Counted from the stretch's first letter, positions 6,038 through 58,336 are shown. The stretch: 64,000 nucleotides of DNA from Kudoa neothunni (GCA_964304625.1 OZ199840.1:115795-179794); one strand, 5' to 3'. Numbers and translations: made by a program. Notes: generated by a model not told the origin, from the letters alone.

Positions 6038-9000
6038 TTAGGGTAATAATTCGTAAATATGAGCGTTTATTTTTTTCTTCCTGAAAACCACGAAACCAAT
6101 AGCACCCATGATCATAGCTCCAATAGCGGCTACTGCAATGATTCTAAAACAATATCAGTTAAATTATAAAAACACAATAAATTAATACATGACCATGGTT
6201 TTAGAACTAAATGTAAAATTTATTTATGTTAAAAATATTAATTAATAAACCTTGAACTGCTTTTTGCTCCTAAAAGTTACAATTTAAATTATTTTCGAAC
6301 TAATAATGTTTTACCTTGCTCAATCGTAGCCGTCCCATAAACTGTTTTATCGGTGGAACTGTACACAGTCAAGTGATAATTGTTGCCATCTGCTAATCCA
6401 CTGATAGTGAATGATTTGCATGAAGGGTACGTTCTACATCCATTGTCATTTCGTCTCATGCATTTTTTAATAATTGCAATCGATTTGGTACTCGCATTAC
6501 GTAATTCCCACTTACATTTGGATTTTTCATTAAGACTAGATGGTAGGGTGTTTTCTATAACAAATGATTCACCATCCCTTGTTATGGTCACATATATTAT
6601 TTTGTCGTTTTCTGTGGGATTCCCCTTTGGAGCAGCTATTTATTTTAAATATAATAATAATATTGAAAATATTTTTACTAGCTACTAAAGTAATTTCATT
6701 TCGCTCTGATTTTCCCACTGCAGTAATAGACACTTTGTACTCTTCATTTGCATCATAGTCGTTAAATTTAATAGAACTGCACAATGGAAATGAGGAGCAT
6801 GTGTTTGAATTGACCGGGCTCGCAGTTGTATCAACTGTTGTAGCTGGGGCAACATTTGTGTCAGTTTCAGTTTGAGTAATAGATTCAGCTCTTGCAATTT
6901 TTAATTCATTAATTTCTGATTTTAGACTTTGAATTTTACTGGTAATAGTTGGTTGTTGGTCGGGATTAGGACTGGATTCGGCTGGTGAGCTTGGTGGAGT
7001 ATTTTGAGTTTCTGGCACAGCTGCCGGTGTCTGTGATGCTTCGCAGACGTAAACATCTTCAAACCTTTCATCTTTTTTTATTTGGATTGTATAATGACAA
7101 ATGGCTTCTGGGACTTTTTTGGACAATTGTGCATTCAATTCCAATCCTTGCTCAGTGTATTTTTGAGTTATTCTCAAGGTTGCCAGATCTAGATTGAGTT
7201 AATAAGTTAATTTTTTGAGAAATATACTCGTCGTAACATTTTCATATATGTGTTCCTTGTAATCCTTGTCAGCAATGACCTTAACGTCGTAAGGAGTATT
7301 TGGTTCAAGGTCAATTATTGTTATTGGTTCTCTACATCTTCCTCTACAAGGATTGGTTTCGGTACATTTAGCGGTGTAAAATGTATTTTTTCCAGCTGGA
7401 CTTACGTAATACTCGCAGTTTGGCTCATCTTTCTTATCAGTTCTTGCCGTATCTCCAATAGCTGTGAGTGTAGTTGTTGATTCTGTTTTAGTAGGGGCAG
7501 TTTCTTGGAAATTTTTGTTCTCCTCATTATCTTTTAATGATTATTAGTTTTGTTTATTTTTAATTTCAAATTATTACTTGTTCTTATAAGTATTTGTTCT
7601 TTGAAGGAAGTTAAATCTGCCATGCCACTGGACTCAATTTCAATTATATATGGTTTTCCCGGAGCCAGCCCTTCAATTATTAATTTTTCGCAACCAGTTT
7701 TGCAATCACTACTACTATCACCACTCTTTTTAGTGGTCGAATCACATTTAGTGGTTGATGCAGCGTGTTTGATTTTGTCAGCTGGGTAATGACTTAGAGT
7801 ACAACTAGTGAACTTGGTTTCTGATTCTGGCTTAAAGACTGCTGCGTCAAAAGATACACCTTTATTGGTATAATCTGACAATAAACCGTTTCCAGGCTCC
7901 AATATCGCTAATTATTAAATATATAATCTTATTAAATTTAATGATACCAAATTTTTTTTGTGAAAATCCATCTAAATCACCAATAGAAGTCTTTGAAAGG
8001 TCGTGATGCCTGGTTTGTACTAAAACGTTGTAAATATCTTTTGTTGCAGTCAAGGTAAGCTCAACATCTTTGCATGGTGCGTAACATTTTCCATCCTGAT
8101 TTCCACAGTTTGATTCGATTTGTTTGCTATTTCCTGCAGATGTACCATCTTTAATACCAAAAACACAGATCTCAGATGCTAGTGTTAAATCTGTGAATTT
8201 AAGAACAACTTGATTTGCAGCTCCTGTCTTTTTAGTAACATAATACTGAGGCTCGTAAATGGCCATATTATCCTTCATATACGCATTTGGCATATAGTAA
8301 AAGAAACTTGGATAATTAACACATCTCATCTCATAGTGAGGAACCAATAAGTCAAATTCAACCTCATTATCTCTGTTTGCTGTGTCGCATGTTCCTCCTA
8401 CAGTACCCGCTTTGAATTGTGCGTCTTTGTAATGAATAGGACACGCAACTGGAGAACAGGTTTTTGTTAGGAATCTCAATTTCTCGTTATTCTTAGACAT
8501 TGTTACTTGAGGATTTACCAGTAACGCTAAATTGAATAATATGATTTATTGATTAAAATTTGTTTAGATTACGTGTGGCCAATCCAAACACTTTTCCACC
8601 TTTTGGATATGTGTCTGCTTTAACTGTAGCCTCAACAGTATTATCATATACATATATATATTTTGTTCGTGGTGTGAGTTTATCATAAGGAACTTTACTA
8701 CCTTGACTATTACAAGCAATTATGCAATATTGGTTGTTATTCTCGGTGGTACTATATTCAGGGCAGGCCGTTATTTCTTCATATGCAGCTGCCCCTGTTT
8801 GGATACCATCGTTTGCGGCTCCATTGGACTTCAATAATCGGCACTTTTTATTATTTGAATAAGTAGAGCCGCCAAGTGTGTGCTTTATTACATTTGAGCT
8901 AGTGCCACTATCATATTCAATGTGATATTTGAGGGTTGCTGGAGGATCGGGTGCTGCATTATTTTCAATCAAATAAAGAAATGTGATTTGTATAACTATT

Positions 9001-9071
9001 ATTTATTAAATAACTATTACAAAACATTATATACAGAATAAATGATGTAGGAATTTTTGTATTGCTATCAT
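6038..9071 (-). CDS. Surface-protein paralogue B, 10 exons, type I membrane protein with FN3-like Cys-rich modules (881 aa as assembled)
   Basis: Exons 9035-9071, 8573-8995, 7948-8526, 7578-7907, 7228-7530, 6679-7188, 6315-6635, 6251-6269, 6189-6206 and 6038-6143 join in frame through GT-AG introns of 39-47 nt. N-terminus MIAIQKFLHHLFFIQITFLYLIENNA. C-terminus ..SSSKTMVIIIAVAAIGAMIMGAIGFVVFRKKK. FN3-like strands DLEPNTPYDVKV, GLAPGKPYIIEI, GLADGNNYHLTV. Confidence 0.9.
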
Positions 9072-11812
9072 TAACGAGATGGGGAAAACAATTACAACTG
9101 AATATATGAATGCTATATTAATGTCGATATTTGCGTCCGATAAGAAAATGAATTGGAACGAAAAATTTTTTTAATAGTATTATTTTTCTTTAATAATAGA
9201 TTTATCCAATAAATATTATTTTTTTCTTAATATTATATTATATAGTAACTTTAGAATTAAAAAATGAACTATGACCTAAAATTATGAAAGATTTGGAAGA
9301 TTATGACAATATTTTTGACTTACTATTAGAAAAATAAGAAAATGTAAATTCTAAGGTTCAACACTTATTTTTTTATTAAAGTAAATTGATTTGAAAAATC
9401 GCATACCGTACAATTTATAATGATCCATGATAAAATCATTTTTCCTTCACGTGTTTTTAGGAAATGCACGTTTCAAAAATGACAAATATATATAATTTTA
9501 ACTGTTAGCAATGATAAATTGATTAATTCCTAGATTATTTCGGTACCGACTGACATAGTTTATACCCGGAATGGTCGCACATAATCAAATTTTTACTTTA
9601 CTTTACTTTTCTTATCTATGTTATTATTATCATTTTTTAATCTCCCGATTTTTAAAAGTTGCAACAAATAATACTTTTATTATAATGGAAATGATAAATG
9701 AATCAAAATAATTGTTCAACAACACTAATTAATAAAGGTACTCGTTTTTATTGATAATCTCTAAAAAAGTAAAGGAATATTGAAAGAATCATATCTTTGT
9801 TAGAAAATTATCATAGAAGATCATTCAAAATTAATCCATTCATCAATATAGTTATTTATTAACAAAAATATTTACTATATACAAAATTATGAAGTAGAAT
9901 TTACTTATAGATTAATTTATAAATATTATTACAAAATCAAACATTTTGTTATACGAAACAACCAATTTTTGGTTTATTCGGCATCAGAAATTTAACATTT
10001 ATTAACTAAAAAAATTCAAATAGGTTGCTAAAAACTTTATTTTTATAATGAATACATTATCAACAACAATACTCGTTTATTTTATTATTTAATGTTGAAA
10101 AACTAAAATATCATTTTAACCGTGACAGTAAAAGAAAAATAATTCGTTTTATAAGTCAAGAATACATAAAATAAGAGATTATAAGACATAAATATTACAA
10201 ATTTTTGTATTACATTAAATTATAAAAAAATTATTTAGTTTAAAATATCCTGTATTGACATAGATGGTGAATCGTATTAGAGAAGTCGTTCAAATTAAAA
10301 TAATTTCTTGATCTAAAATATGCAGTAATAAAACGAATTCTTTTTAATTTCAAAATTAAACAACAACAATGATATCTCTACGAATAAAAATATATTCTGG
10401 ACAAAATGTGAAATAATTCCACTGTTGTTTTCTATATATGAAAGTAGTCTATTTCCTCAGTTAATCAAGTTAACCAAATTATTTTAATATAAATTAAATT
10501 ATGATTTTTATTTTGGGCAGTTTAGAAGTGAATGTTTTTCCTCTCAGTAAATTTTTAACTTATTAAAACATCTGTACTTCTCATATTTCTGAATAAACCA
10601 ATAGATTATTGATTACAAATATTATTTATAAAAAATAAAAATTTATCAGCCGTAGTTTTTTGAATGTCTGAATTAAAATTAAATATATTAAATAGCATCC
10701 ATGTTAGACTACTGAAATAACCCAAACCTGCAATATATTGTATCGATATTAAATAATTGAAATATTTTTATAGATAGGATAAATCAAAATTGAAATTTTT
10801 GTTATCTAAAACACAATGTTTGTTATTTCATTAAGCAGGAATATTGATTTAATAAAGATTAAACTAAAAACTTCTCTACGCAATTCTAATTAAAATTCAT
10901 TTTTAAATGATATATTTAAAATAACATTAATATAAATTTTTCAATAATACATCAACTCAAATGCCGAAAATGTCATTCCACGTTAAATGATCTTATCTCC
11001 ATTTTTTTAGTACATAATTTAATAAAATATACCATTCTTGACTTTATGGTGCCGTCAGACGTAGGAAACATGAGGCATTATTAAAAATATCCGTTTATGG
11101 ATCAATATCCGATCAATGTAAGTATTTCATTTTGTGTACATTCTTGCTATTGTATAACTCATAGGGTAGATGTTTCTTTGTATAATTTTTATTTTTTTCT
11201 GATAAATAACTACTTAATTTGTAAAATATATCTACTTATCAAAGTATAAAATTGTTATTCAAAATTTTTTTATGAATTTAACTTTATACTCAATGAAATT
11301 ATAAAAAATTTATTAAATGTCATCAATATTAATTAACTAAATGTATAATTATCTTATATAAGTATGAGATGAATTAAAGAATTTACCATAATTAGCATAA
11401 AATGATTAGACTAATCAAAAATTAATGCTTATTATTTAATAAAAATTTTGTATTAATATCTCTCATAACATAAAATGAGATAATAATGTATGAAAATAAA
11501 TTCACTGAATTTATTAAAAAATTTTGTTAGAACATACCAATCCGAAATCAATAGAGAAATTAAAGAAGGTAATTCTGACCTATTTAAATTTTTACAAAGA
11601 TTAAACATAACAATACTATTTATATAATAAATCTATTAAATTTATTTTAATCCTCTAACTACGTGAAATAAACGTACCCCTAACGACATTAGGGTAGATT
11701 TAACCCCAGATTTTCGTTGGATCATTATATTTGTAAAATTAATATATAGTAAAATGCGAAGTTTTAAAAAATTCATAAGAACAGATTTCTAGGAAAATAC
11801 AGAATATTCATA
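9072..11812. repeat. 2.7 kb upstream flank of B, duplicated upstream of D (about 31182-33925)
   Basis: Colinear similarity through to tctaggaaaatacagaatatt(c/g)ata in both copies. Confidence 0.95.
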
Positions 11813-14800
11813 CAGTCGAGATTGGATATTGCATGATTCGGTATTGGGTAATTTAAGATTTTCGATATGAAGATATTTACATTGGGACTTAATTTTAGAG
11901 TTATATCATTACTTTACTTATTAAATTAATAATATAGAATAAAAATAAAAAAATATTTTTTCTATGTGCCTCTGATTTAGTATTGTGTCAAAACTTTTTA
12001 TTGCGTAACGTAAATTACCAACGTGACTCGATATTGCGTGATTTCATCTTCAATATATCCAGGGAGCAGCGTGAAATTTCTGAGAAAATTAGAATAATAC
12101 AATATTACAATTCAATAAGATCAATAAAGGGCGCAAAGAAAATGACGTTTGAAAAGTTTAAACTTAGTGGTATGATTATTTTTAATCGATAACAATTTAT
12201 TTCTTAAAGGACATCCAACGCTTGACAGAATACTTTCTCATGAAACCATGCTGAAAAATTCAGATGTTGTAGGAAATAGGAAGAGGCATCCAAATGGAAG
12301 ATTTATCAACATAGACGAATAAGTTTATGAATGGTTTATCAAAAAACGCACCAATGGTCACATTATTTCTGGTGACGTAATACTTGAAATGGCCACCATA
12401 ATTTTCAGAAAGAATGTAGTTCAAAATTTTAAAGCAAGCAGGGGTTGGCTAGCGGGGTTTAAAAAAAGGTTTGGAATCATTTTCATGGTGAAGCTGCGAG
12501 CGCTAACGCTGCGTCTATTGATTCGTGCATCTATGAAAATAAAAATTTGATAAGCATATATAGCCCAAAAAATATCATCAATATTGACGAAACTGGTTTG
12601 TTTTATGAGCAATTACAGAACAGTAGTTATTAAAAGAAGAAAATGACATTAAAGGTAAAAAGCTATCGAAAAAAAGAGTAACGATTTCGGTATCGTGCTC
12701 TTTAAGCGGAGAAAAATTGCCCTTAGTCGTAATTGAGAAATACCAAAACCCCAGGTACTTCAAGGTGGTAAAAAATTTACCTTATGAGTATTATGCCCAA
12801 AAAAATTATTTGATGAACTCTGCTATTTTTTTCCAGATAATGAAAAAATTAAATTTTAAAATGGAGTCAGAACAACGAAAAATACTAATCTTGCTGGACC
12901 AATGTCCAGCACATCCCAAAGATATCACTTGCTTTAGTAATATAAAGTTTCTCTTCTTACCTAAAAATACTACAAGTGTTTTACAGCCACTCGATCTCGG
13001 AGTGATTAATTGTCTTTAAAGTAGATATAAAAAAATATTGTGTAGCCATATGGCATTATGTGATGATCCGTTAAATAATAGATATACATTACTTAATGCA
13101 ATTTTGACACTCCAAGAAGCATGGAACAGTATTCCACCCGAAATTATTGTCAACTATTTTAAAAAGTGGGGCATATTTAACAAAAGTAAAAGCTAATGCG
13201 AACTTCAAAAATTAATCCATTATCATAGGAGATACAGAGACGGAAACAAATGATAAAATTTTCGAAGATGAACAGAGTATATATATATATATATAATAAA
13301 ATTTTAATATTTTTATAGTCGAGGAGGAAACATGGGAGTCCAACTTTGATGATGATAACTTACCTACTTGTGAGGATGATAACGGCGGTGTCTTAACCCA
13401 TTCAGGGTTTTCATTGCGTTTTCGCAACAAAATGTATTTGATTATATAACAACATATAAAATTATTATTTTAAATGTATTCTGTTATTTTAAATACCCAA
13501 ACATATTAATTTATGGAAACAAATATTATTGGAGTTAATTCATATTTTAAGGTTGAACAAAATATGATTTTATGTGCTATTTTTGAAATTCCAACTAAAC
13601 GAACATCAATTAGAGTTTCGCCTAACACAGATCATGAAAATCTTATTAAAAAACATACCAACTGCCATTTGTCATTTAATATCTATATATGATAATGAAT
13701 GCATCAAAGGATTAATGAATAAATATTTATTTGTAAAAAACATGTGTTGCGAAAACGCAACGAAAACCCCGAACGGGGTAATTGTGCGCGCTGCTTTAAG
13801 TATCACTGTATAATGGATCCAAAATCGTACATGAATCTTTTTGATGCAATCAAAGAATATGAAGATAACGAAAATCTAGAGTTGACTGATTTTGTGTTAT
13901 TACCCCCTGAAAAAGTCGACACTCTTACAGATACTGAGGATAATTTTGAATCCAATTTTAATGGCATATGTGACATCAATTTAATTCCTGAGACGTGTGG
14001 AGAAATTGAAGTATTTTCTGAGGCTCTTGAATCCTTCGTAAATGATGATACCTTGATATGGACTGATAAAACTAATGTCGATTCTACTAAAGAAAAATCA
14101 AAATTTTTATGTCAGAATGAGACTATATTAATCAATCGGAATATGGATAATTTTTCCATCAATACTTGAAGGGAACTTAAATTCTTATGGAACTTTTTTG
14201 GAGTTATTTGATGAAAATTTATTTACACGCATCGTGAAACAATCTAATTTATATGCGAGCCAGAATAACAACCATGATTTTCATGTTACGATTAGTGAAA
14301 TGAAATCATTTATCGGTATTCTGATTTTGTCTGGTTATCATAGATTAGCACGCCAGTCTATGTATGGGGAATCTTCTCCAGACGCTGGTGTTGAACTCGT
14401 TAAAAGTTCAATGACCTACAAACGCTTCGAATCTATAAAAAAAATCATCCATTTTAATAATAATTCAAATATTGACACCATCGATAGATTTTTCAAGGTA
14501 CGCCCTTTAATTCAAGAATTTAACAAAAATTTCAAAAAATTTGGAATATTCGAAAAATATATATCTGTGGACGAGCATATGGTACCTTATACTGGTAGGC
14601 ATTCCGCTAAAATGTTTATGAAAAATAAACCAATTAGATTTGGCTTCAAGCAATGGGTTATGTCATCACCCTCCGGTTACATGTATAGTTTTGACGTGTA
14701 TAATGGAAAGTCAGCAAATTATGATAAAAAATATGGTTTGGGTGGTAGTGTAGTAATCTCTTTTGCGGATGAAGTAAAAAAATGAAAAAGATCTCAATAT

Positions 14801-16663
14801 GTTCTTCGATAATTTTTTTATTTCTCATAAATTATTACAAGAGCTCAAAAGAAGAAATATCAAGGCTACTGGAACCTTAAGATTAAACAGAATATCAAAT
14901 TGCCCTGTTACTCCCCAAAAAGTAATGGCAAAAAAACCAAGGGGAGAATTTGAGATGTTTTCTGATGATCAACAACGTATTCATTGCATTCAATGGAATG
15001 ATACAAAACCTGTTATCGCATTGAGTAATTGCTACACCGCTCACCCTCTCCAAAGCATCAAAAGATACTGTAGGTCGAAGAAAAAAGAAATTACTATTTG
15101 TCAGCCATTTATGATATGTGTATATAATAAGTTTATGGGTGGAGTAGATATTGCCAATAATTTAATTTCTTGTTATAGAATTAACATAAAAGGAAAAAAA
15201 TGGTATTGGCCCATTTTTACGAATATGATATCAATGGCAGTAGTAAATTCATGGAGGATTTATAATATTGTAAATAACACACAAATTGACTTGTTGAAAC
15301 ATGTCAGGAATATAGTGACTGACTTGGTAACATCCGCAAAAACCAGCATTGGCCGAAAGTCTCTGTTGGGTAAATTGCAGAACGCTAATCTATGTAATAA
15401 ACCAACATTGGTGTCTCATCCTCACAAAATAAGACGTAGGTGTGTGGTATGTAAAAATATTACCGTCCATATTTGTAAAAGTTATGGAAATCATATTCAT
15501 ATAAAGTGCTCGGGGTTGTTCCACAAGTAAATGATTAAAATTATAATTTTCTTGTAGATAACTTTTTTTCCTCATGTATTTGACAAATATTATTTATGTG
15601 CGTTGTAATCTTATTCCCATACAAGGAAAGTTTTTCATTGCATTTTTGGAATCTAAATACTTCTCGAATATACTCTTTTATAATTTAATTTTTTTCGATT
15701 ATTTTTTTAGATGATTATTATAATCCTTATTAAGTCTAATACCAGATATGTAAAAACTACAAAATTGTAAGTTAAATGGGTTAAAGGGGTAAAATTTAAT
15801 CTCACATGGCATAATAAGGGATTAGTTAGAGGTTTTGTTACTAGTAAGGAAATATTGTTGAAATATGAACCAAAAATAATTTTTTATCGCTAATCTGGGT
15901 CAAGAATACCGAGTGACACTCAAACGTACTACAACCCATATCATTAAAAAATATAGAAAACAAAAAAATATAAATTTTTCTATAATATGTCACATAGGTA
16001 TTACTAAATTGTTGTTTAAAATTCATTGTTTTTGTTAATTTCATTTGTCACGTGACACGCAAATTTATATACCACAAGTTTTTCGTTGCGTTTTCGCAAC
16101 ACTGCAAAAAACTACGTATCTTTGTAAGGAGATAAAATTTTAAAATAGTTTTTTTTAAATCAATAATAATATTGTTAGTTTTACTTTATATTATAATCTT
16201 ACAAAAATACAAAATTGGAACCTGAATGGGATAATATCTATAGTGAATCCAATTCAGAATGAAATCGAATCTGATGAGGAAGAACCAAAAGTTCCAATAA
16301 AAGATATAAAGTATGCCGTAAGTACATTAAGGAAGGTGTTTATTCAGGAAGATCCATCTGGACTCATCGATCTTCATCCGATAATGGATCGAATTTTAAA
16401 AATATCATCTCAAAGATTGCACCAAACTAAAATTACTTCATTTTTTCATAAAAATTAATAATTTTGTCTGGCTGAATTAAATAAAATTCCTCATATTTAT
16501 TTTATTTCACTAGCAATGATTTAAGGTAGGATAAACGCACAAAACAAGTTTAAATTGAATATTTTTACAAGTGCGCATTTGCATGATTCGATATTGCGTA
16601 AAACCTTTTTATTACGTAATTTTTGTGACCTAGGTAAAATTACGCAATATCGAATCTCGACCG
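11813..16663 (+). mobile_element. pogo/Tigger-like DNA transposon with decayed transposase, interrupted by a piggyBac
   Basis: TA-flanked TIRs CAGTCGAGATTGGATATTGC / CGGTCGAGATTCGATATTGC. CENP-B HTH-like segment (VYEWF, FKASRGWL), NIDETG, LLLDQCPAH, PKNTTSVLQPLDLGVI. C-terminal PCNA-binding-like QTKITSFF at 16243-16458. Stops and frameshifts present. Confidence 0.9.
13397..16230 (+). mobile_element. piggyBac element with near full-length transposase (13813-15530, two frameshifts)
   Basis: TTAA|CCCATTCAGG ... CCTGAATGGG|ATAA. Subterminal repeat TTGCGTTTTCGCAACA occurs three times. Catalytic motifs SVDEHM, FFDNFF, YNKFMGGVD, KKWYW and a C-terminal Cys/His-rich region. Confidence 0.95.
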
Positions 16664-16769
16664 TAATAGTTTAACTTTTTTGCGAAAAAATCATTTATTA
16701 TAAAAACGAAATTGAAATTTTTATATACATGTTAGTTTTCGAGTTATTTCCTCCCTTTGCAATAGCCAC

Positions 16770-17720
16770 TGCCTTATAATTACCGTCCCTTGTACATTAA
16801 TTCCAAAACTCATTCAAAGAATTCTTTTTTAATTTCATTTTATTGAGATACTAAGAATCTTGTTGATTTTTTCGATTGTGGGATTTCTTTAAGATTATAT
16901 TTTCGCTTTCTCCATCGTCTCACTAACTCCCGCGGAACTCCAATCTCTTTTCTCATAAATCTTACATTCATGTTCATTTGCATGGTCAATCGCTTTAAAC
17001 TCATAGCTGTCTAATTGACTCTTTGTTTATCCATAACAAGGATTTACGAGTATCAAAAACGAATGCTCAAATTATCGTATAGTTCCCTATGATCTGAATG
17101 TAAAGAGGTTTGTGCTAGTACTGATAAAGTATATTAAATATAATCTTAATTTTGTTACGAAACTGATACATTACATATGTTCTACAAAATTTTACAGTCA
17201 GACCTACACGGAATTTGAAAAAGTAATCATACTACGTGTAAAAAAGAATCAAATATATTGCTCTATACATAATATAGATGTCTAATTCCAGCTGTAAACA
17301 ATGTGAAATATAAAAGGATTTTAAATGAATTTATACTGCATTTTTATTATAATAAATGTATATATTACTAGTGGCATCATTTTTAACATAACGCTCTGGT
17401 TCGGTAGGATCACTTCATATTCGATTTGTGCAGAGGACACCTTACCAATATATAACGAACCCAATCTGATACTTGAATCTAAGTATACGCACAATCATAG
17501 TAACATTTTTGGAAAAGTTAATGTCAATCTTCAAAGTATGGCCGATAAAAAGTTTTCGACCAAAACGAGATTATATACAATAAATATTAAATCATATTTT
17601 TTGATTTGAACACTTAATAGTTTGAATTATTGATAAATAAAAGCAGGATTAAAAATATCGGAGCATGAATTAAATAATCGAAATTTCTCTAACTAGATAG
17701 TAGGGAAAAATTCGTAAATA
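16770..17720. repeat. Downstream flank of C, duplicated downstream of D (about 27302-28165)
   Basis: Colinear similarity, e.g. ctcactaactcccgcggaa and agtatggccgataaaaagttt in both copies. Confidence 0.9.
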
Positions 17721-17726
17721 TAGGGT

Positions 17727-20700
17727 TTAATTTTTCTTCTTGAAAACCACGAAACCAATAGCACCCATGATCATAGCACCAATAGCCGCCACTGCAATTA
17801 TTCTAAAACAATATTAGTTAAATTGTAGGAACATAATAAAGTAATACATGACCATGGTTTTAGAACTAAATAAAAAATTTAATTATTTTAAAAATATTAA
17901 TTAATAAACCTTGAACTGCTTTTGGCTCCTAAAAGTTACAGTTTTAATTATTTTCGAAGTAATAATGTTTTACCTTGCTCAATAGTGGCTGTCCCATAAA
18001 TTGTTGGATTGATAGAACTGTACACAGTCAAATGATAATTGTTGCCATCTGCTAATCCACTGATAGTGAATGATTTGCATGGGGGGAACCTTTTACATCC
18101 TTTATCCCTTGGACTCATGCATTTTTTAATAATTGCTATCGATTTGGTACTCGCATTACGTAATTCCCACTTACATTTGGATTTTTCATTAAGACTAGAT
18201 GGTAGGGTGTTTTCTATAACAAATGATTCACCATCCCTTGTTATTGTCACATATATTATTTTGTCGTTTTCTGTGGGATTCCCCTTTGGAGCAGCTATTT
18301 ATTTTAAATATTAATATAATAATAATATCGAAAATATTTTTACTAGCTACTAAAGTAATTTCATTTCGCTCTGATTTTCCCACTGCAGTAATAGACACTT
18401 TATACTCTTCATTTGCATCATAGTCGCTGAATTTAATAGAACTGCACAATGGAAATGAGGAGCATGTGTTTGAATTGACCGGGCTCGCAGTTGTATCAAC
18501 TGTTGTAGCTGGGGCAACATTTGTGTCAGTTTCAGTTTGAGTAATAGATTCAGCTCTTGCAATTTTTAATTCATTAATTTCTGATTTAGACTTTGAATTT
18601 TACTAGTACCAGTTTGTCCTTGGTCGGGATTAGGGCTGGATTCGACTGGTGAGCTTGGTGGAGTATTTTGAGTTTCTGGCGCAGCTGCCGGTGTCTGTGA
18701 TGCTTCGCAGACGTAAACATCTTCAAACCCGTCATCTTTTTTTATTTGGATTGTATAATGACAAATGGCTTCTGGGACTTTTTTGGACAATTGTGCATTT
18801 AATTCCAATCCTTGTTCAGTGTATTTTTGAGTTATTCTCAAGGTCGCCAGATCTAGATTGAGTTGAATAAGTTAATATTTTGATATATATATATATACTA
18901 GTTATAACATTTGTATATATGTGTTCTTTGTACTCTTTGTCAGCAATGACTTTAACGTCGTAAGAAGTGTTTGGTTCAAGATCAACAATAGTTATTGATT
19001 CTCTACATCTTCCTCTACAGGGATTGGTTTCAGTACATTTAGCGGTGTAAAATGTATTTTTCCCAGCAGGACTTACGTAATATTCACAATTGGGTTCTTC
19101 ATTTTTATTTGCCTCTGCGTTGCCTCCAATAGCTGTTAGTGTAGTTCTAGATTCTGTCTTAGTAGGGGCAGTTTCTTGGAAATTTTTATTATCCTCATTA
19201 TCTTGTAAATATTATTACTTAAGTTAATATTAAATTTTTAGTTATTACTTGTTCTTATAAGTATTTGTTCTTTGAAGGAAGCTGGATCTGATATGCCACT
19301 GGATTCAATTTCAATTATATATGGTTTTCCCGGAGCCAGCCCTTCTATTATTAATTTTTCGCAACCAGTTTTACATTCGCCGCCATCACCACTACTACTA
19401 CTACCACCACTATTCTTTTTAGTGGTCGAATCACATGTAGTGGTTGATGCAGTGTGTTTGATTCTGTCAGCTTGGTAATGATTTAGAGTACAACTAGTGA
19501 ATTTAGGATCTGATGATGGATTTAAAAATCTCCCATCAAACGTTAAACCTTGTTTCGTATAAACAGATAATAAACCAACTCCAGTCTCAGATATTGCTAA
19601 AAAATTTATAAATTAACACCGAATTAAATAAATTACGAAATTTTTTTTGAGAAAATCCATCTAAATCACTAAGAGAAGTTTTTGAAAGATCGTGATTTCT
19701 GGTTTGAATTAGAACATTATATATTTCTTTTTCTGCAGTTAGAGTAAGCTCAACGTCTTTGCATGGTGCGTAACACTTTCCTGCAGTATTTCCACACTTT
19801 GATTCAAAGGCATCACCCGATGCTGCACTTTTAGCGTCTTTAATGCCAAAAACACAGATCTCAGATGATAACGTTAAATCTGTGAATTTAAGACCAACTT
19901 GATTAGGAGCTCCTGTCTTTTTAGTCACATAATACTGAGGCTCATAAATAGCCACATTTTTCTTCATATATACGTTTGGCATATTATAGAAGAAGCTTGG
20001 ATAATTCAGACACCTTATTTCATAATGGAGGAATTAATAAGTCAAATTCAACATCATTAATTGTGTTGTCCGCGTCACATGTTCCTACAGCGGTACCCGC
20101 GTTGAATTGTGCGTCTTTATAGTGAATTGAGCAACCAACTGGAGGGCAAGTTTTAGTTAAGAGTTTTAGTTTTTTCTCTCATCAACAGATATTTTTGTTT
20201 GGGGATTTACCAACAACGCTAAATTTAAAGATGATTTATCGAATAAAAATTATTTAAATTACGTATGGCCAAACCAAATACTTTTCCACCTTTTGGATAT
20301 GTCTCTGCTTTAGCAGTGGCCTCATCACCATTATCATATACATACATGTATTTTGTTCTTGGAGAGAACTTATTGTATGAAACTTTGCTAGCTTGACTAT
20401 TGCAATCTATCACGCATTTGGTGTTTTCATTATTATTCCCAGGGCACTCAGTTATTTCTCCATACGCGGCTGCTTCTGTATTGGATATCAATATACGACA
20501 CTTTTTTCCTTCGCCATAACTTGACCCAACAAGTATATGTTTTATTAAATTTGAATTACTAGCATCACCGTATTCAATTTGGTATTTGAGTGTTGCTGTG
20601 GGAGTAGACGCAGCTGGAGTTCCCGATACTGTTGTATTTTTAATTATACAAAAGAATGCGATTTGCATGGCTAATAAAGATTCATTATTAATAATAAAAA

Positions 20701-20743
20701 AATAGATACATAAGAGGAAATGCAAAAATTTATCCTTAACCAT
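17727..20743 (-). pseudogene. Surface-protein paralogue C, three 1-nt indels as assembled (pseudogene or sequencing error)
   Basis: Same 10-exon layout, ending GAIGFVVFKKKN*. Indels relative to the other copies: -1 in the T run at 20170-20175, +1 near 20027, -1 in the T run at 18585-18587. No independent nonsense codons were noticed. Confidence 0.8.
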
Positions 20744-21994
20744 TATAAAAGATAAGGAAAAACAACAAATAGAACTGAATAAACGAATACTATAATACGC
20801 CGATACTTGTATTGAATAAAAAGCCTATTGAAACGACAATATAATTAAAATCTTAATTTTTATTTACTATTAAATTAATAATTATGAATTTAATATAGTT
20901 ACTAAAATGCTGAAAATTGCAAATTGAAACAATTATTTTATTATATAGCTCAAATAAATTCGATAATACTTATTATCTCTTGTTCACTCCGCCATAATAA
21001 ATCCAAGGAAAAAATTAATCGATTGGACCAACCATTAGTGGATTCACAAACGAATTTAATCATGTTAAATTTCATGAACTATATTTACATTGACGTCATG
21101 TAAGGTCATCCCAGGTATAAATAATATGAATAATTGGTAAAAATATTTATTCGTATTCATTACGAATAAATCAATCATCTAGATAGATACAAATGTTAGA
21201 CGACACGTATTAAATTTGTGTATCAATATTGAGATCATTATAAATTTTGAATTTTTTTACTGTAAACATTATTTTCATTAAATATATTTGTAACAACCTA
21301 TAATATTAAGTAATTATAGATCAACATTTTGCAAACTTTATTTCTAACCATCATGCATACAAGATAAAGTAATTTAGTCATATTTTTCCTTACAAGAATT
21401 AATTATGGTCGCGACTTTGGTTTTTGGGGATTACTTTTATAATATTTTGATTAATTATATCCGTAAGTATTTATAAAAAATTATATAGCCATAAATGGAA
21501 GAAATCCTATTTTTATAGAAATATCAAAGTATTTTCGTACGGTTGAAAAATAAAAAGGAAGTTGTTTATCGGATCCTATTTAATCTTGCGATTTCCGACG
21601 TTTTTATATGCACATATAATAACTTCCATGATATTCTATCATAATTTTTCCTTTTATATTAATTCCATTTTTATAAATATAAATTGAATTTTACTTTAAT
21701 TGAGATGGTTAACATTATTTCACAATCCGTTTATACACTTACCTAAATAGCTTGGTCTAATTTATTTGTCACATCACATTCCATGTATTGTACTAATTAA
21801 TATTATAAAGTTTTTTTTAAATATTACTATATCGAGCTCTTTTATATTCGAAAAATAATTATTTATTTTTTAAGAAATCCCATGAAAAGATCAATAAACT
21901 GGATACTCCAAATAATTTTAATCCAGTTAAGTATTAAAACATAATTTCCAAATTTATGCGTACAAAATAACGTTTTCATTTTAAATTAAAATTG

Positions 21995-24900
21995 TGCTAA
22001 TTATAAAGCCTGTGACTCATGAAAAACATCCCTTTCTGCATCTTTTTTGTCTCTAATTTTTTAACGATTCTTATTGATAAAATAAATAAATATAGAAAGG
22101 AAAAATTTAGGTATAAAAAATAACTTCTAAATTTTAACCAAATCCGATTTCGAGCAAAATCGTCCCCACGTGTAATCTCCCTGTTGTTTACAAAAACTTG
22201 CCAATCTCATTATTTGTCACATATTTTAACATATTCGCTTTATTAAATCGCCTAAATGATTTTTTGGCATTAAGAAATAAACGTATTTGCTAATTCCGCG
22301 TTTATTAACACGTACTAGTCCAAAATGGAGTCGTTAAGTTATAAAGTCGATGGTGACTTTTATTTACTCATTAATGATTACGAAAAGTTCTTCCATGTAC
22401 GTGCTGCTAAGGGTTATCTTCACAAAGCTCCAACTCGCTGTAGAAATTACAGGAATTTCGATTGCTTCATCCTTAGAAAGCTCAAATTAAATGATGTCAG
22501 GCCGATAACTGAACTGTCCGCCAGTATTGGTATAGTATACGACTACGAAAATTCGGCCTCATATCGTTCTAATTTTTTATTACTTTATTATAGGTCGTTA
22601 TCATTAGATTTAAAAATGACGAAAACAACAAATTTGTTTAAAATTTAAAATTCTACCGCTTTCTCATCATTCTACCTTAATCCTCATTATGTTAGTGTAA
22701 GTTGAATTATGTCAACGTTCTTTGTTTTTAATAAGTTTTTTTAAATTAATCTAATAGCTCGTTTGGATTCTTATAAAAATTAAATATATTGAAGAATTTT
22801 TTAATGTCATTTTGAGTTGCACTCAATCATCCTCTCTACATCTTAAGTGAATTTGAGGTATGAAGAAAGCTTACAATAGCAGATAAAAGTCATCTAAAAT
22901 TTTTAATTTATATATTTTTTATGACAATTTTATTGTTTATTTGTGAAGTTATTGAATTATTTTTGCTGAAAAATTCGTTGGAGTTTTTGTAATTATAATA
23001 TTTTTCATCATTTAATGTTGTATTCGGTAGATTATCATTAGAAAAAAATCTTACGCCATAATTTATGTTATTTTGTCGTACGAAAGTACGAAACCTATTC
23101 AAGGTCATGAATTCGAAATTCATTATAATTCTTATGTTTTAGTTTATTCGTAGTATATAACATTACACATTCAATGTGTGATTTTTTTTAAATAATATAA
23201 TCCCTCGAAAATCATTGAGCTTTAAAATTTTCATTTTATATAGATTTTTCAATAATTATAAATGTAACAGTTTTATTATTCTTGATTTATTATTTATTTT
23301 CTCATTATCAGTTTGATTAAATCATTATTTCAATATATAAATTAATTAAATTAATTGTTAACATTTTGTCGAATTTATTTCGCGAATATAAACATTATTT
23401 AATAATTTTAATTTTAATAATATTTATTTATGTTTTCAAAAAGATTGTTTAATAATTGGAACTTATTTCCATATATTTAGCGGACCCATTCTTCTTGTAA
23501 ATAGCTCTCAAATTCGATATCACTTACTCCTCTTCTGATTCCCAATATTTTAAGTTTCAATTTGCCTCAACAGGATTCTATCGTATTTGAGTGCTTACCG
23601 TTGATACAATAGCGTAATGAATGATTAACAGTAATGTGATTGTAACCCAATTCATCCAATTTTTGATAGGCTTTCCATTCATCACAGTAGATCGTAGTAC
23701 CCCTGATAACTTCGTTTTGAATAATAGGAAGTAATGCTTCCTTATTTATTCTTTCAACCTTAAAATATCTGAACTCCTTAAGTTGTCTTTTCCCGTGGCT
23801 ATCGACAGAGCATAAACATAGGCCAAAGACCCACAGACCACCAATCGTATCACCGTATTTTACGCGGCGCAAACAATGAGTTAATTAGTTTTTAGAGAGT
23901 AAGATTAAAATCATATATACACATTCCCTCCTCGGATAATTCTTCAGCATTTGGTTGATATTCACTGATACTACTATTTAACTAAAAATAGTCTAGTTAA
24001 TCTTTTCGCATGTAATACTCGATACATCGGCTTTATGAGACAAGATTTCCTTACTTACAGAATACTACCATTTATCTCCTTTAAGATATTTACCCCTGTT
24101 ATTATTTCTTTTCCCTTGAAGTAAGCTTTCGTCGATTTCGACCACAAATCCTTCTCCGCCAAACGGTCTCCTATCCTTAAAGCCGCCCGAACAAATATAT
24201 CGTACATTTTTAAACCAGTTTATCCCCGTAATTTTGGATATATGTACCAATGAGCATGTGGATTCTATTTTATTATTCATAAGCCAATAATAAATTACCT
24301 TCATTATCTGTTTTACGGTTATTTTAGAAATTTTTTTCCGGCACCTCTCGAAAAGAAAGTATCTTTAGGGGATGAGACCTAGGTTTTACAGCTATTACAT
24401 ATTGAAAAAGTATAAAATCGAATTATTTTATTACTTTCTACATACATGAATAGTCTGGTACTTATTAGTGCCAACAGAAAAATAGTCCTCACTAATAGTG
24501 GTTTCTTTCCTATTATTTCGTCTGGAAACATAGATCGAATTGTGACATCTACAATTTCTATATCCCGTTGGAATCCTATTTAGGAAATTTTTCGAACAAA
24601 GAAAATTGTATAGAAGATCTCTATTATTAATTAACACAAAAAACTGATCGTCACTATCATCATTAACCATTGCGAATATATACCATTTAAAAAACTCTCA
24701 CTACATTCCAACTTTATTTCAAATAATGAAATACTAAAATAATATAATATTTAAAATTATTAACCTCAAATAAAAGTTTAAAAAGCTAAATTACGAAGTT
24801 CTATCGAATTAAATGAAAATTAAAAAGACGCACGAATTAATTCGTTGAAGGTCATCGCTGTTCCAAATACACATAATGAGGATTAAGGTCGAATTTTGAG

Positions 24901-27320
24901 CAAACTGAAGAATTGTAGATTTTAGACAAAATTTTTGGCTACACCATTTTTAAAAATCAAATAATAATGATCTGTAACAAAATCGTAAAAAATTAAGACC
25001 CTATGAAGTCGAATTTACGTAGTTTCATATTACATCAGAACGAGTCCGCCTATGACAGAAATAACGTCGATTATTCTTTCACATATTTATTTAAAAAGTG
25101 ATAGTTTATCTCAAGTCCCTGCTTTTAAAAAGAAAAGGTGTAAAACTATTTTTTCTTCTAAAATGAAACATTTTTTAAACTCTCCTATAGGCGGTACGTC
25201 CCAAAACCCAACATTGATATAATATTTTAAAAATATTATATCGCTGGTGTATGAATGAAACTATTTTAACTACAACCAAAAAAGATAAGTTAAGTATGCC
25301 TAAAGTTTCAGCGTGATTCAAAAAAATCCGACAACTCTGCAAATCACCCTTCGAGAACAGAAACAAGCTTAATGGGAAGGTTTCATTGCAGAAATTGATG
25401 AATTTGTCCTCCACGAAAAAAGAAAAAAATAATCGGGGTAGGCATCTTAAAGAAGACGTATGGAAAACTTTTCAAAATAAAGAATTTTTAGAATCAAGTA
25501 CTAAATCTCGAATTTTATATAATTATGTATATAACGTATTTCTTTTACTTAATAGACGCTGACGATAGAAATGGTAGCGATTATTTCCCCACAGAAGTTG
25601 AATTTTTTGATAAATCCCTCGATAGTATTTTATCATGTCACTACTTTATTAAATAATGTAACTAGATGTTGCAATAAGAAGAGGAAAATATGATGAAAGG
25701 GTTGACGGTCCTTGGATTTTTGGATTGTCTCAATGTAAACTTGACGACATGGGAAAGAGGAAATTCATAGAATTAAGGTACTTCTATGTATAGAAGAAGA
25801 TTTCGGTGACACTTTTGCCCATTATCGAAAGAGAAATCCACGGAGGGTCAGCCATATCCAATGACGAATGGTCCACGTGAGCTTGGCTATGACTATGTTA
25901 AGGTCAACCACTCGAAGGGATACGTGCAGAATGGCCCCCATATAAATAGTATCTATCGATTCTGGGGAGGCTAAAAACAAAATTTATTCGCATGAAACGG
26001 GGGGTATCATTCTCAAATCTTGTGGAATACCTTATTGAAGAATGGTACCAATTCATCATGGGCGAGAAAATAAATCTTTTCAACAACATTTTAAAAACAA
26101 TTTATCTTTGTTTTAATTAGATTATCGTATATTTGTTTTTAAAAATATTCATATTTTAGTCTTTTTTTCTATGTACAAAAAATCGAATAAATGGACAAAT
26201 AAACTATTCCAATAAAGATAGGTTAGTTATTTAAGAATTCATTAGATAAACTAATATTTACTACACAACATTTTCTGAATTTAATTAGGGCAAAATTTTA
26301 ATAAGTGAACAATTTTTATATAAAAATAATTAAATGCTTGGGTACACTTAGAAAATCGATTAGCTGAATAATTTTATTAAAAAAATATCCCAGAGAATTT
26401 GTTATAGCGGTAGAATTATTCTTATAAATTCACTAAAATGGATATTATGAAATCAGATAAGGATTATTTGAAGATAAATTCAAAAAATTATATTTTTCAT
26501 TTACGGAACTTGAATAATTCAATATTCACATTCTCGACAAAATATCACGTTTATAAAAAATTAGTTATTAAATATTATTAAAAAATCTTTTTTCCAACAT
26601 TTGAGATTTTTTAAATTTACTCAAATAGAGTATTTTGAGAAATTTGCATATAATACTTTATTATCCTGATTGAATTTATTTACATAACCTTAAAAATATT
26701 CTATTTAATATTTTGATAAATGCTGTATTATATTTATTATTTTATGACATATATAACAATTAATAATTTTTTTTGAAGATAATGGACACATTTAAACGGC
26801 AACTTTAAAAAAATAAATAATATTAAAATTTTTCATGATCGCATTTTCAAACAAATTCAGTCATATGACTTTATCCAGTAAATATAAATTTACGAAAAAA
26901 AATAAAAACTAAACATCATTTTTTTGCCTAATAAATCGCAATGAGATTTACATTTCATCAATTGGATATAAACAAATTGATTTTCTCAGTTTGTAAAATG
27001 TAGCACCATTTATAATGAGCACTTAAACTTTTTTTGTTCAAATAATTATCTTAAAAAATAATTCAGGTGATTTAACATAACGAATATGTTAAAATATGTG
27101 ACAAATAATGAAATTGGCAAATTTTTGTAAACAAAAGGACATTAGACGTGGGGATGATTTTGATCAAAGTGGGATATGGTTAAAATTTAGAAGTTATTTC
27201 TTAAGGAAGAATTTTTACTCAACATATTTATTGAATTAATAAGAATTATAAAAAATTAGAGACAACAAAGACGCGCAAGGGGGTGTTTTCAGGTGTTACA
27301 GGCTTTATAATTACCGCCCC
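21995..27320 (+). mobile_element. Outer Merlin/IS1595-like element with long TIRs and decayed plus-strand transposase
   Basis: About 250 bp imperfect inverted repeats (21995-22240 and 27075-27320; taattataaagcctgt / acaggctttataatta). N-terminal ORF at 22325. Remnants at 25300-26100: EIDE, KNNRGR, GPWIFGL, TLLPIIEREI, NDEW, VNHS. The left end is degenerate, so the boundary is approximate. Confidence 0.75.
22510..25050 (-). mobile_element. Inner Merlin/IS1595-like element nested in the outer one
   Basis: Imperfect inverted repeats of about 180 bp (ccttaatcctcattatgt / acataatgaggattaagg). Minus-strand fragments GGEGFVVEIDES, GGLWVFGL, TTIYCDEWKAY, HITVNHS, HSNTIES match the ISXO2/Merlin DDE signature. 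Boundaries approximate. Confidence 0.85.
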
Positions 27321-31100: not shown

Positions 31101-31181
31101 TACAACTATTATTTGTTAAATAATTATTATAAAACATTATATACAGAATACATGATGTAGGAATTTTTGTATTGCTATCAT
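28170..31181 (-). pseudogene. Surface-protein paralogue D, four 1-nt homopolymer indels as assembled (pseudogene or sequencing error)
   Basis: Same 10-exon layout, ATG at 31181, stop at 28170-28172. Indels at 29508-29510 (+G), 29208-29211 (+A), 28653-28657 (+T) and 28442-28443 (-A), all in homopolymer runs. Confidence 0.8.
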
Positions 31182-38019: not shown

Positions 38020-38530
38020 GGACATTTCGTTCGTTCGTTCATTCATCAGTACTTTGTGCAAATTTGGAGTCTTGGAGCGAACACGAACTTACCATCTTCG
38101 CCTTAGACTATTTGAAGATACTAAATAACGATATCTAAGAAAGTTGTTAACAGTTATTTTTTCGAGACCTACCGGCATCTCGAGATCCAAGAGGGTTTTT
38201 CCTAATAACGAAAATATCTACAAAAGAGATCGTTAACACATGAACTCATTGACCTTGTTTGAAACTGCCGGTCTATTCCAACAATAAAGTTGATAAATCT
38301 AACTAATAATTATGTCCAATATGAAATATTTAGTTATTCCTTTTAATTTCACATCATAATCAATCTTTTTAACAATTAAAAAAATTGACTGTTTGCCTCC
38401 TTAGTCATAACTTTGATACTCAAATATTTCTGTAACCACCTGAGTCATTGGTTGTGGGAGCTCTTATGCAGTTTGCTTATGTCCGCGTTGGAAAATATAA
38501 GGCGGAAATGATAAAATAATATGCTATGAT
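38020..38530. repeat. Unclassified ~500 bp dispersed repeat; second copy at 60330-60576 plus 63128-63370, split by a piggyBac
   Basis: Shared blocks gagcgaacacgaactta, ttccaacaataaagtt, taaatctaactaata and gcctccttagtcataactttgatact. Confidence 0.85.
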
Positions 38531-50451: not shown

Positions 50452-50453
50452 TA

Positions 50454-52383: not shown

Positions 52384-52389
52384 TATTTT

Positions 52390-54009: not shown

Positions 54010-54083
54010 TGAAGGAGGGGGTGCGAATTGAAGGTGGAAATTAGGATTGGGGAACGGGTGTAAAGTTAATAGGGAAACACTGC
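54010..54083 (-). mobile_element. hAT-like terminus (CAGTGTTTCCC...TCGCACCCC); related terminus in opposite orientation at about 63367-63430
   Basis: Similar terminal and subterminal motifs at both sites. They point away from each other, so they belong to separate elements. Confidence 0.45.
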
Positions 54084-55337: not shown

Positions 55338-58336
55338 TTAATTTTTCTTCTTGAAAACCACGAAACCAATAGCACCCATGATCATAGCTCCAATAGCCGC
55401 TACAACGATTACTCTAAAATGATGTCAGTTAAATTTTAGGAATATAACAAAGTAATACATGACCACGGTTTTAGAACTAAATAAAAGAATTAATTTATTT
55501 CAAAAATATTAATTAATAAACCTTGAACTGCTTTTGGCTCCTAAAAGTTACAATTTAAATTATTTTCGAAGTAATAATGTTTTACCTTGCTCAATAGTGG
55601 CCGTCCCATAAACTGTTTTATCGGTGGAACTGTACACAGTCAAGTGATAATTGTTGCCATCTGCTAATCCACCGATAGTGAATGATTTGCATGAAGGGTA
55701 CGTTCTACATCCATTGTCATTTCGTCTCATGCATTTTTTAATAATTGCTATCGATTTGGTACTCGCGTTACGTAATTCCCACTTACATTTGGATTTTTCA
55801 TTAAGACTCGACGGAAGCGTGTTTTCTATAACAAATGATTCACCATCCCTTGTTATGGTCACATATATTATTTTGTCGTTTTCTGTGGGATTCCCCTTTG
55901 GAGCAGCTATTTATTTTAAATATAATAATAATATCGAAAATATTTTTACTAGCTACTAAAGTAATTTCATTTCGCTCTGATTTTCCCACTGCAGTAATAG
56001 ACACTTTATACTCTTCATTTGCATCATAGTCGTTGAATTTAATAGAACTGCACAATGGAAATGAGGAGCATGTGTTTGAATTGACCGGGCTCGCAGTTGT
56101 ATCAACTGTTGTAGCTGGGGCAACATTTGTGTCAGTTTCAGTTTGAGTAATAGATTCAGCTCTTGCAATTTTTAATTCATTAATTTCTGATTTTAGACTT
56201 TGAATTTTACTAGTACCAGTTTGTCCTTGGTCGGGATTAGGACTGGATTCGGCTGGTGAGCTTGTTGGAGTATTTTGAGTTTCTGGCGCAGCTGCCGGTG
56301 TCTGTGATGCTTCGCAGACGTAAACATCTTCAAACCTTTCATCTTTTTTTATTTGGATTGTATAATGGCAAATGGCTTCTGGGACTTTTTTGGACAATTG
56401 TGCATTCAATTCCAATCCTTGCTCAGTGTATTTTTGAGTTATTCTCAAGGTTGCCAGATCTAGATTGAGTTAATAAGTTAACTTTTTGAGAAATATACTC
56501 GTCGTAACATTTTCATATATGTGTTCTTTGTACTCCTTATCAGCAATGACCTTAACGTCGTAAGAAGAGTTTGGTTCAAGGTCAATTATTGTTATTGATT
56601 CTCTACATCTTCCTCTACAGGGGTTAGTTTCAGTACATTTAGCGGTGTAAAATGTATTTTTCCCGGCTGGACTTATATAATACTCACAGTTTGGCTCATT
56701 TTTCGGATTGCTTTCGTTGTTACCTCCAATGGCTGTTAGTATAGTTGTTGATTCTGTTTTAGTAGGGGCAGTTGCTTGAAAATTTTTGTCATCATTTTTA
56801 TCTTTGAAAACTTTTAGTTACTGCTAGTTAATTTTCAATTGTTACCTGTCCTTATAAATATTTGTTCTTTAAAATTATCTGGATCTGTTATACCAGATTC
56901 AATTTCGATGATGTATGGTTTTCCTGGTAATAGTTGCTCAATTACTACCTCAGTGCATTCTATTTTACAGGTATCAGCTCCACTGACACTCGTACTGCTA
57001 TTGCATTTCGATACCGTAGTTGTAGCCGGCTTAATTGTGTCAGCAGGATAATGCTTTATAGTACAAGTAGTGAATGCAGTCCCTGATGGTTTATATACGG
57101 CAGCATCCAATTTTACACCCCCCTTTTTCAAATCAGACAAAAGACCATCTCCACTTTCCAAAATGGCTATAAAAACGAATATACAATATTGTTACGAAAA
57201 ATAAAATACCAAACTTTTTCTGAGAAAACCCATCTAGATTACCGGTAATGGTTTTAGATAGGTCGTGGTGTTTGGTTTGAATCAAGACTTGGTAGAATGC
57301 TTTTGCTTCAGTTACAGTAAGTTCCACATCTTTACAAGGTACGTAACACTTTCCGGCAGTATTACCACATTTTGATTCAAACACAGCGTTAGCTGCTTCC
57401 CGTTTACCGCCCTTAATGCTGAATATGCAAATTTCAGCGGATAATGTTAAATCTGTGAATTTAAGAGCAACTTGATTAGCAACTCCCGCCCTTTTTGTTA
57501 CGTAATACTGAGGTTCATAAATAGCAATATTTTTCTTCATGTATGCATTTGGCATATAGTAAAAGAAACTTGGATAATTCACGCATCTCATCTCATAATG
57601 AGGAATCAATACGTCAAACTCAACATCATTCTCTGTGTTTCCTGTATCGCATGTTTGCCCTGCATTACCCCCTTTGAATTGTGCGTCCTTATAATGGATT
57701 GGGCACGCAACTGGAGAGCAAGTTTTTGTTAGAAGTTTCAATTTTTCTGTAGCCATAGAGATCGATACTTGAGGATTGACCAATAATGCTAAATTTGATG
57801 AAATTATTTATCAATTCAAAGTTATTTAGATTACGTATGGCTAAACCAAACACCTTTCCACCTCTTGTATACTGCTGTGATTTAACAGTCCCATCTTCAC
57901 CAACATATACATACATGTATTTTGTTCTAGGAGAAAGTTTATCATATGGTACTTTACTTGTTTGGCTATTGCAATCGATTATGCATTTTGTGGTTTCGGC
58001 AGTTTCATGTCCAGGGCATTCTGAAATTTCTTTAAGATCAGCTGGAGTACTTGAGTCGAGTATAGTTTCTGCTTCGTTTGACCTCAATATACGACATTTT
58101 CCTGTAGCATAACTTGTTCCGCCAAGTGTATGCTTAACTACATTGGAGCTAGCGGAGCTATCATATTCAATTCGATAATTTAGAATAGCTAATGGAGTAG
58201 ACGTTGATGGAGAAGCGGGCGCCGTTGCATTTTCCATCGTACAAAATAATGCGATTTGTATGACTAATAAAGATTCACTGATGATAATAAAAAACTATAT
58301 ACATAGGAGGTAATTCAAAAATTTATCCCTAACCAT
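55338..58336 (-). CDS. Surface-protein paralogue E, intact, 10 exons, 869 aa type I membrane protein
   Basis: Exons 58303-58336, 57835-58263, 57210-57788, 56846-57166, 56499-56801, 55950-56459, 55586-55906, 55522-55540, 55459-55476 and 55338-55413 total 2610 nt in one open frame. Signal-like MVRDKFLNYLLFIQIALFCTMENA; TM VVIVIVVAAIGAMIMGAIGFVVF followed by KKKN*. Intron 1 has an in-frame TAG, supporting that it is spliced. Confidence 0.92.

Follow-up and report, generated by a model that had tools for sequence, protein, structure and literature searches.

A 64,000-nucleotide stretch of the Kudoa neothunni genome (C3:115795-179794; hereafter the window, with positions counted from its first letter) carries five minus-strand paralogues of a 10-exon gene, labelled A-E. 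These genes are probably members of a very large single-pass membrane protein family, in which the membrane-proximal part of the gene, here called the stalk, is homogenised within a tandem cluster and the tips encoded by the preceding exons are old patchworks. The constancy of the stalk and the conflicting relationships between gene parts are best explained by recombination between paralogues. Myxozoans matter economically as parasites of fish, yet almost nothing is known of the way in which they present themselves to the host; this family occupies a noticeable part of the 40-Mb genome and supplies both candidate surface antigens and a model for the origin of their diversity. The K. neothunni assembly was built from yellowfin tuna HiFi reads with hifiasm-meta, followed by YaHS scaffolding and purge_dups, and its 40.2 Mb are arranged in three chromosome scaffolds plus a mitochondrial contig of 18,219 bp (bioRxiv 10.1101/2024.11.01.621499).

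The 10-exon model was built on copy B (6038-9071) from open frames and GT-AG sites. Its exons 1-5 lie at 9071-9035, 8995-8573, 8526-7948, 7907-7578 and 7530-7228, and exons 6-10 at 7188-6679, 6635-6315, 6269-6251, 6206-6189 and 6143-6038. All splice donors and acceptors were conserved in all five window copies and in 13 further copies from the same genome. Copies B (881 amino acids) and E (55338-58336; 869 amino acids, with a shorter cytoplasmic tail) are intact, and copies C (about 17700-20743) and D (about 28142-31181) also have 10 exons. Copy A (1-2303, ATG at 2303) runs from exon 1 to the middle of exon 6 within the window, and its remainder lies past a 200-N scaffold gap.

Per-segment identities between the copies formed a steep gradient along the gene. 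Exons 2-4 were 63-92% identical for most pairs (exon 2, 66-92%; exon 4, 63-85%), with B and D 98.6% identical in exon 3; identity then rose through exon 5 (84-93%) to exons 6 (97-99%) and 7 (92-97%). Exons 6-9 together with introns 5-7 were 90-100% identical, compared with 55-96% for introns 1, 3 and 4, and the flanks were unrelated between copies except in specific pairs. Strong divergence of exons 2 and 4 and near-identity of introns 5-7 had been described in the original prediction and agree with these values; near-identity had also been claimed for the whole of exons 6-10, which holds for exons 6-9 but not for exon 10, at only 83-91%. Sliding-window identity confirmed the gradient and moved its boundary: nucleotide diversity dropped abruptly from 0.15-0.31 to 0.02-0.09 in the middle of exon 5 (about 7400 in B), rather than at exon 6 as first supposed, and rose again past exon 8. 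The homogenised core runs from mid-exon 5 to intron 9, at 6144-7375 in B, with equivalents in C (17803-19046), D (28246-29486), E (55414-56646) and A (1-584).

Different parts of the gene paired the copies differently. Over the upstream flank and exons 1-2, A resembled C (85-93%) and B resembled D (92-97%), with other pairs at 50-70%. The upstream flank of B (9072-11813) is common with that of D (31182-33926), the two regions being 93% identical over 6012-11813 and 28116-33926, and the upstream flank of A (2304-3497) is common with that of C (20744-21946), with 91.6% identity between 2037-3497 and 20477-21946. In exon 7 the closest pairs were instead B and E (97.2%) and C and D (96.9%), against 92.8% for B and C, and the downstream flank of C (16771-17619) is common with that of D (27302-28118; 88%). 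Copy D is B-like in its 5' half and upstream flank and C-like in exons 6-7 and its downstream flank. These pairings reproduce those first proposed, apart from intron 6, where B had been grouped with E: in this intron C, D and E have the same sequence, from which B departs at one base.

The pairing signal of exon 7 came mainly from a 45-nucleotide Cys-bounded loop with two discrete forms. Copies B (6418-6462) and E (55689-55733) carry the form CMRRNDNGCRTYPSC, and C (18077-18121) and D (28520-28564) the form CMSPRDKGCK[RK]FPPC. Among the 17 copies that share the stalk (see below), the two forms occur 11 and 6 times in otherwise identical surroundings, and in distant paralogues the same inter-Cys loop is the variable spot in an otherwise conserved module. 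In the loop, synonymous and nonsynonymous differences each reach a proportion (pS and pN) of about 0.25, compared with 0.05 and 0 in the preceding 60 codons, which fits two old loop forms carried on a homogenised background.

The conflict in topology between segments is far beyond chance. Informative sites changed pattern blockwise, from AC and BD in the 5' part to CE in exon 3, DE in the last part of exon 4, BE in exon 5 and BE|CD in exon 7. A four-gamete test resembling the pairwise homoplasy index (PHI), with site order permuted, gave p<=0.0002 for both five and four copies. When all 15 five-taxon trees were compared by the approximately unbiased (AU) test, the 5' segment admitted AC|E|BD only, and this tree was rejected by exon 5 (p=0.004). 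With four taxa, exons 1-2 and exon 3 each favoured BD|CE (log-likelihood differences of 45-97; other trees p<0.0001), whereas exon 7 favoured BE|CD (differences of 31-33; other trees p<=0.0002). The claim that the two halves of the gene have conflicting relationships was therefore upheld, and congruence of the trees across exons, which would have spoken against it, was looked for with the AU tests and not found. On 14 non-redundant copies from the genome, PHI gave z scores of -37 in the tips and -9 in the core, and exons 2, 3 and 4 each showed significant internal recombination on their own.

Silent sites indicated that the stalk is homogenised and not simply constrained. Mean synonymous divergence (dS; Nei-Gojobori) for exons 2-7 was 0.75, 0.69, 0.79, 0.36, 0.04 and 0.13, while the ratio of nonsynonymous to synonymous divergence (dN/dS) stayed at 0.17-0.43 throughout; the values for the stalk (0.29-0.43) were not below those of the tips. 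Copies elsewhere in the genome served as the decisive control. Four tandem copies at C3:5.00-5.03 Mb repeated the gradient, with tips 73-90% and stalks 96-99% alike, and their stalks were only 69-86% identical to that of B. Six dispersed copies on three chromosomes showed no gradient, their stalks being 68-86% alike and no more similar than their tips. The stalk is thus not intrinsically conserved but locally uniform within clusters, and this local uniformity is the signature of concerted evolution. Three observations agree on this point: the stalk is more alike within the control cluster than between that cluster and B, its homogeneity reaches silent sites and introns (dS of 0.04 in exon 6; 90-100% identity in introns 5-7), and relationships along the gene are phylogenetically incongruent by the AU and PHI-like tests. 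Together these data make a very clean case of concerted evolution confined to one part of a gene, with its control, clustered versus dispersed copies, in the same genome.

The window holds only part of the family. The stalk DNA of B found 16 further copies at 91-95% identity, 11 of them in the same array as B, which spans C3:36-172 kb, and five in a second cluster at C3:2.79-2.84 Mb. At least 17 copies therefore share the stalk, and identity within this 17-copy subfamily was 91-100%. We aligned 18 copies (the five of the window and 13 fetched) and assigned each segment to sequence types. From exon 5b to intron 9, 17 copies carried a single type (93% threshold), whereas each tip segment had 8-16 types that reassorted between copies, as did the types of the upstream and downstream flanks, and the nearest relative of every window copy shifted segment by segment. 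A copying model gave donor tracts of about 30-900 nucleotides, with most switches within exons 2-5. Breakpoints at introns, as exon shuffling would leave, were considered and rejected: most switches lay within exons, whose share of them roughly followed their length.

An exon 3 profile extended the family much further in this genome. It scored at least 150 modules among 359 candidates, on all three chromosomes and mostly in open frames. Against 1.84 billion proteins the same profile found only 15 representatives, and the seven that were looked up were unnamed singleton clusters from run or metagenome assemblies. One of them, on a Logan contig from run SRR33849685, is a 333-amino-acid open frame in which exon-2-like and exon-3-like modules are joined without an intron; this relative of the family comes from a different sample and is either a transcript or an intron-lost copy.

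The original prediction had attributed the pattern to unequal crossing-over or gene conversion in the near-identical stalk, by which variable tips would be swapped between loci. Gene conversion or unequal crossing-over remains the best fit, given the gradient at silent sites and introns, its cluster-specific nature and the reassortment of flanks. The swapping of whole tips does not, as the switches lie inside exons 2-5 and the tracts are 30-900 nucleotides long; because the tips are themselves fine-grained mosaics, a picture of tips exchanged at the stalk is too simple. We propose that non-allelic gene conversion, unequal crossing-over or both would repeatedly homogenise the core, which is about 1.2-1.3 kb long, starts in mid-exon 5 and ends with intron 9, and that this near-identical block may act as the homology anchor that sustains exchange. 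The 5' exons retain old types, with silent divergence of about 0.7, and are patchworks of tracts of about 30-900 nucleotides shared with different paralogues. Tip diversity could be kept either because the tips are too diverged for efficient conversion or by selection against homogenised tips. If the product is, as it appears, a surface glycoprotein at the host interface, the outcome would be a standing repertoire of ectodomain combinations.

Several results weigh against this reading or limit its detail. PHI did not reach significance for exon 7 taken by itself, nor for the stalk when only the four window copies were analysed (p=0.13), and the core showed no GC (guanine and cytosine) enrichment of the kind that marks biased gene conversion. 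No RNA run was found to contain the locus. On the side of the assembly, the 200-N gap inside copy A (C3:115595-115794) directly precedes the start of the window, and the piece of A beyond it (C3:115096-115594 and flank) shows 100% identity with C, both at the 3' end of the gene and in the downstream flank; this piece may therefore come from a contig end that was misplaced or duplicated. Two pairs of copies, n36k/f2791k and n49k/f2804k (C3:36-51 kb versus C3:2.79-2.81 Mb, 2.7-2.75 Mb apart), are near-duplicates, 99.2-99.6% identical and with a common spacing of 12.8 kb; they differ by 1-3 substitutions and otherwise by many indels, and reflect either a very recent segmental duplication or a leftover haplotypic duplicate in the assembly. 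The 18 copies contain about 45 one-base indels, mostly in homopolymers, against one nonsense codon. Read-level data consisted of Illumina-derived contigs of 150-640 nucleotides from one fish, the same fish, which are too short for long-range structure, and among the pieces listed exact contigs bridged only one inferred breakpoint of D. Some of the fine detail may therefore be unreliable, given the low coverage, the homopolymer errors, the gap in A and the near-duplicate copies. The main result is untouched by these caveats, since its basis is blocks in which tens of sites differ, flanks that are 7-12% diverged and the comparison of clustered with dispersed copies.

Whether the family goes beyond recombination of this kind to a true antigenic-variation system is a separate matter. 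In such a system one or a few of the at least 150 genes would be expressed, and segmental conversion anchored in the stalk would yield variants that escape fish antibodies. A large repertoire (at least 150) of predicted surface proteins in a parasite, mosaic tips on a constant membrane-proximal part as in the var, VSG and VSP families, and hypervariable Cys-bounded loops would all suit it, and there is a myxozoan precedent: antigenic variation has been observed in certain myxozoans, its molecular basis being unknown (bioRxiv 10.64898/2026.02.11.705288). We nevertheless consider it unlikely. The absence of the locus from the RNA runs counts against it too, and no 12-codon window in the tips (exons 2-5) had pN>pS, although saturation of silent sites weakens this test; windows with pN>pS were confined to the linker of the stalk and the loops of exon 7, regions of very low pS. 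Scaffold C3 carries the array 36-172 kb from its start, and its first 3 kb held no telomere-type repeat among the motifs counted, the (TAAACC)n repeat reported for the species not having been formally counted. No recognisable expression site was seen. Kudoa plasmodia develop inside muscle fibres, where they have limited exposure to antibody. The fuller picture of a cnidarian parasite with antigenic variation in the protozoan style, in which each plasmodium would express one or a few of the at least 150 genes and the homogenised stalk would be its recombination anchor, we hold to be a little more doubtful still. The processes seen at this locus are best described as ordinary gene-family recombination, and nothing yet shows a role in immune evasion.

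An assembly artefact could also imitate recombination, through mis-joins, over-correction between paralogous reads or haplotype switching at low coverage. The assembly authors state a HiFi k-mer coverage of about 7 and residual haplotypic duplication (bioRxiv 10.1101/2024.11.01.621499). The gap in A with its C-identical far side, the excess of homopolymer indels over nonsense codons and the near-duplicate pairs that differ almost solely by indels point the same way. HiFi reads are, on the other hand, far longer than the 1.3-kb stalk. Loci that share segments have flanks 7-12% diverged, and so are distinct places rather than one place assembled twice. The main conflict consists of blocks with tens of differences, and tips that differ by 15-35% do not allow reads of different copies to be merged or cross-corrected. 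Several D-specific tip pieces matched independent Illumina contigs with no differences, two of these contigs bridging the inferred breakpoint, and the depth of the stalk in the Illumina-derived contigs was 5-10 times that of the flanks, as expected of a multi-copy block. An independent cluster repeats the gradient, and dispersed copies lack it. We therefore judge an artefact to be very improbable as the source of the mosaics. Purifying selection on the stalk and diversifying selection on the tips, without exchange between copies, could give constant proximal and variable distal parts at the protein level, but this account is close to untenable, being contradicted by the gradient in silent-site dS (the stalk is constant in its introns too, with a dN/dS not below that of the tips) and by the dispersed copies, whose stalks are as diverged as their tips, and facing in addition significant topological conflict.

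Only B and E have intact frames in the assembly. Copy A has a one-nucleotide homopolymer frame break in exon 4, copy C one each in exons 3 and 6, and copy D four, one each in exons 5 and 6 and a further two in exon 7; across the 18 copies nearly all frame breaks are one-base length changes in short homopolymers. At all four breaks of D, short-read contigs from the same fish carry the length that keeps the frame. We doubt that A, C and D are pseudogenes in view of these contigs and of the roughly 45 indels against one nonsense codon; the breaks are probably consensus errors of the assembly, and homopolymer errors are expected from its low coverage. Automatic annotation of the K. neothunni assembly will probably mislabel many intact family members as pseudogenes. 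Exons 8 and 9 (6189-6269 in B) are micro-exons of 19 and 18 nucleotides immediately before the transmembrane exon, and their splice sites are kept in 18 of 18 copies. Skipping of exon 9 would likewise preserve the frame.

The B protein starts with a hydrophobic, signal-peptide-like segment. Its 28 Cys fall into seven groups of four, exon 6 encodes a Ser/Thr/Pro-rich linker, and there is a single transmembrane helix with a 14-amino-acid tail, RKKKINAHIYELLP. The signal-peptide-like start, Cys-stapled modules, mucin-like linker and single transmembrane helix suggest a surface glycoprotein. Searches and fold predictions were run exon by exon, and exons were joined only in local scripts for frame checks and dN/dS. 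Pfam returned nothing significant for any of the large exons of B. A match to fn3 (PF00041) in one of 16 exon 7 modules scored 12.9 bits (E 0.13), below the gathering threshold of 25. AlphaFold2 models made from paralogue alignments had a mean predicted local distance difference test (pLDDT) score of 63 for exon 7, an all-beta model of low confidence, and 48 for exon 3. Fold searches with the exon 7 model gave a best E-value of 0.08 (Foldseek against PDB) and a best Z-score of 5.3 (VIA), with no coherent family among the matches. In view of the incoherent fold matches, we do not endorse an FN3-like assignment. A word-based protein search with exon 3, in which candidates were limited to proteins of 106-338 amino acids, found no match. 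With 3.2% Cys and the tail RKKKINAHIYELLP, B does not fit the description of Giardia-type VSPs (>10% Cys, CXXC and a basic C-terminal signature).

Comparison with known systems showed partial likeness to several. Like the var (PfEMP1) genes of P. falciparum and other apicomplexan families, the Kudoa genes form a large clustered repertoire of predicted single-pass surface proteins with variable Cys-module ectodomains and a conserved part near the membrane, and in var too non-allelic recombination produces mosaic genes. However, the conserved part of var is the intracellular exon 2, whereas in Kudoa it is an extracellular membrane-proximal block and the exon for the transmembrane segment and tail is less conserved. 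The Kudoa gene also has ten exons, its organism is an animal (Cnidaria), and there is no sequence or Pfam similarity between the two. The VSGs of T. brucei similarly combine a variable N-terminal with a more conserved C-terminal domain, and segmental conversion among array copies gives mosaics; unlike the Kudoa protein, which is predicted to be transmembrane and whose exon 7 module is predicted, with low confidence, to be all-beta, VSG is a helical bundle anchored by glycosylphosphatidylinositol and expressed from telomeric sites, and neither a telomere nor an expression site was observed for the Kudoa genes. Primate KIR/LILR and MHC genes are examples of domain-wise exchange and partial-gene concerted evolution in tandem receptor families. 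As in the Kudoa genes, some of their exons and introns are homogenised within a cluster while the ligand-binding exons are diverse and reassort. They differ in protein family and organism, in the size of the Kudoa family (150 or more members for a genome of 40 Mb) and in that its homogenised block is common to two clusters 2.7 Mb apart.

Among myxozoans, VSP-like and RIFIN/STEVOR-like families have been put forward as candidate variant surface proteins in Sphaerospora molnari (bioRxiv 10.64898/2026.02.11.705288). The S. molnari VSP-like proteins have >10% Cys, CXC/CXXC motifs and a basic C-terminal signature (bioRxiv 10.64898/2026.02.11.705288), in contrast to the 3.2% Cys, seven groups of four Cys and tail RKKKINAHIYELLP of Kudoa B. 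The terms 'gene famil' and 'surface' are absent from the text of the K. neothunni genome preprint (bioRxiv 10.1101/2024.11.01.621499), as are 'gene conversion', 'cysteine-rich' and 'fibronectin' from that of the S. molnari preprint (bioRxiv 10.64898/2026.02.11.705288), and so neither appears to describe the Kudoa family.

Candidate mobile elements lie between the gene copies in the window. Between B and C, three adjacent open reading frames on the plus strand (13744-15530) include two strong matches to piggyBac-type transposases (DDE_Tnp_1_7, E 2e-43 and 2e-28). Inverted repeats of about 270 nucleotides (21998-22265 and 27313-27053, 82.5% identical) enclose a fragment of an ISXO2/IS1595-like transposase (23567-23872, E 8e-14), and 21998-27313 is a candidate DNA transposon adjoining the downstream flank of D that is common with C. 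Short dispersed repeats (38060-38529 versus 60349-60574 and 63127-63366, 84-85% identical) occur in the gene-poor DNA separating D from E and past E, and are probably fragments of a mobile element.

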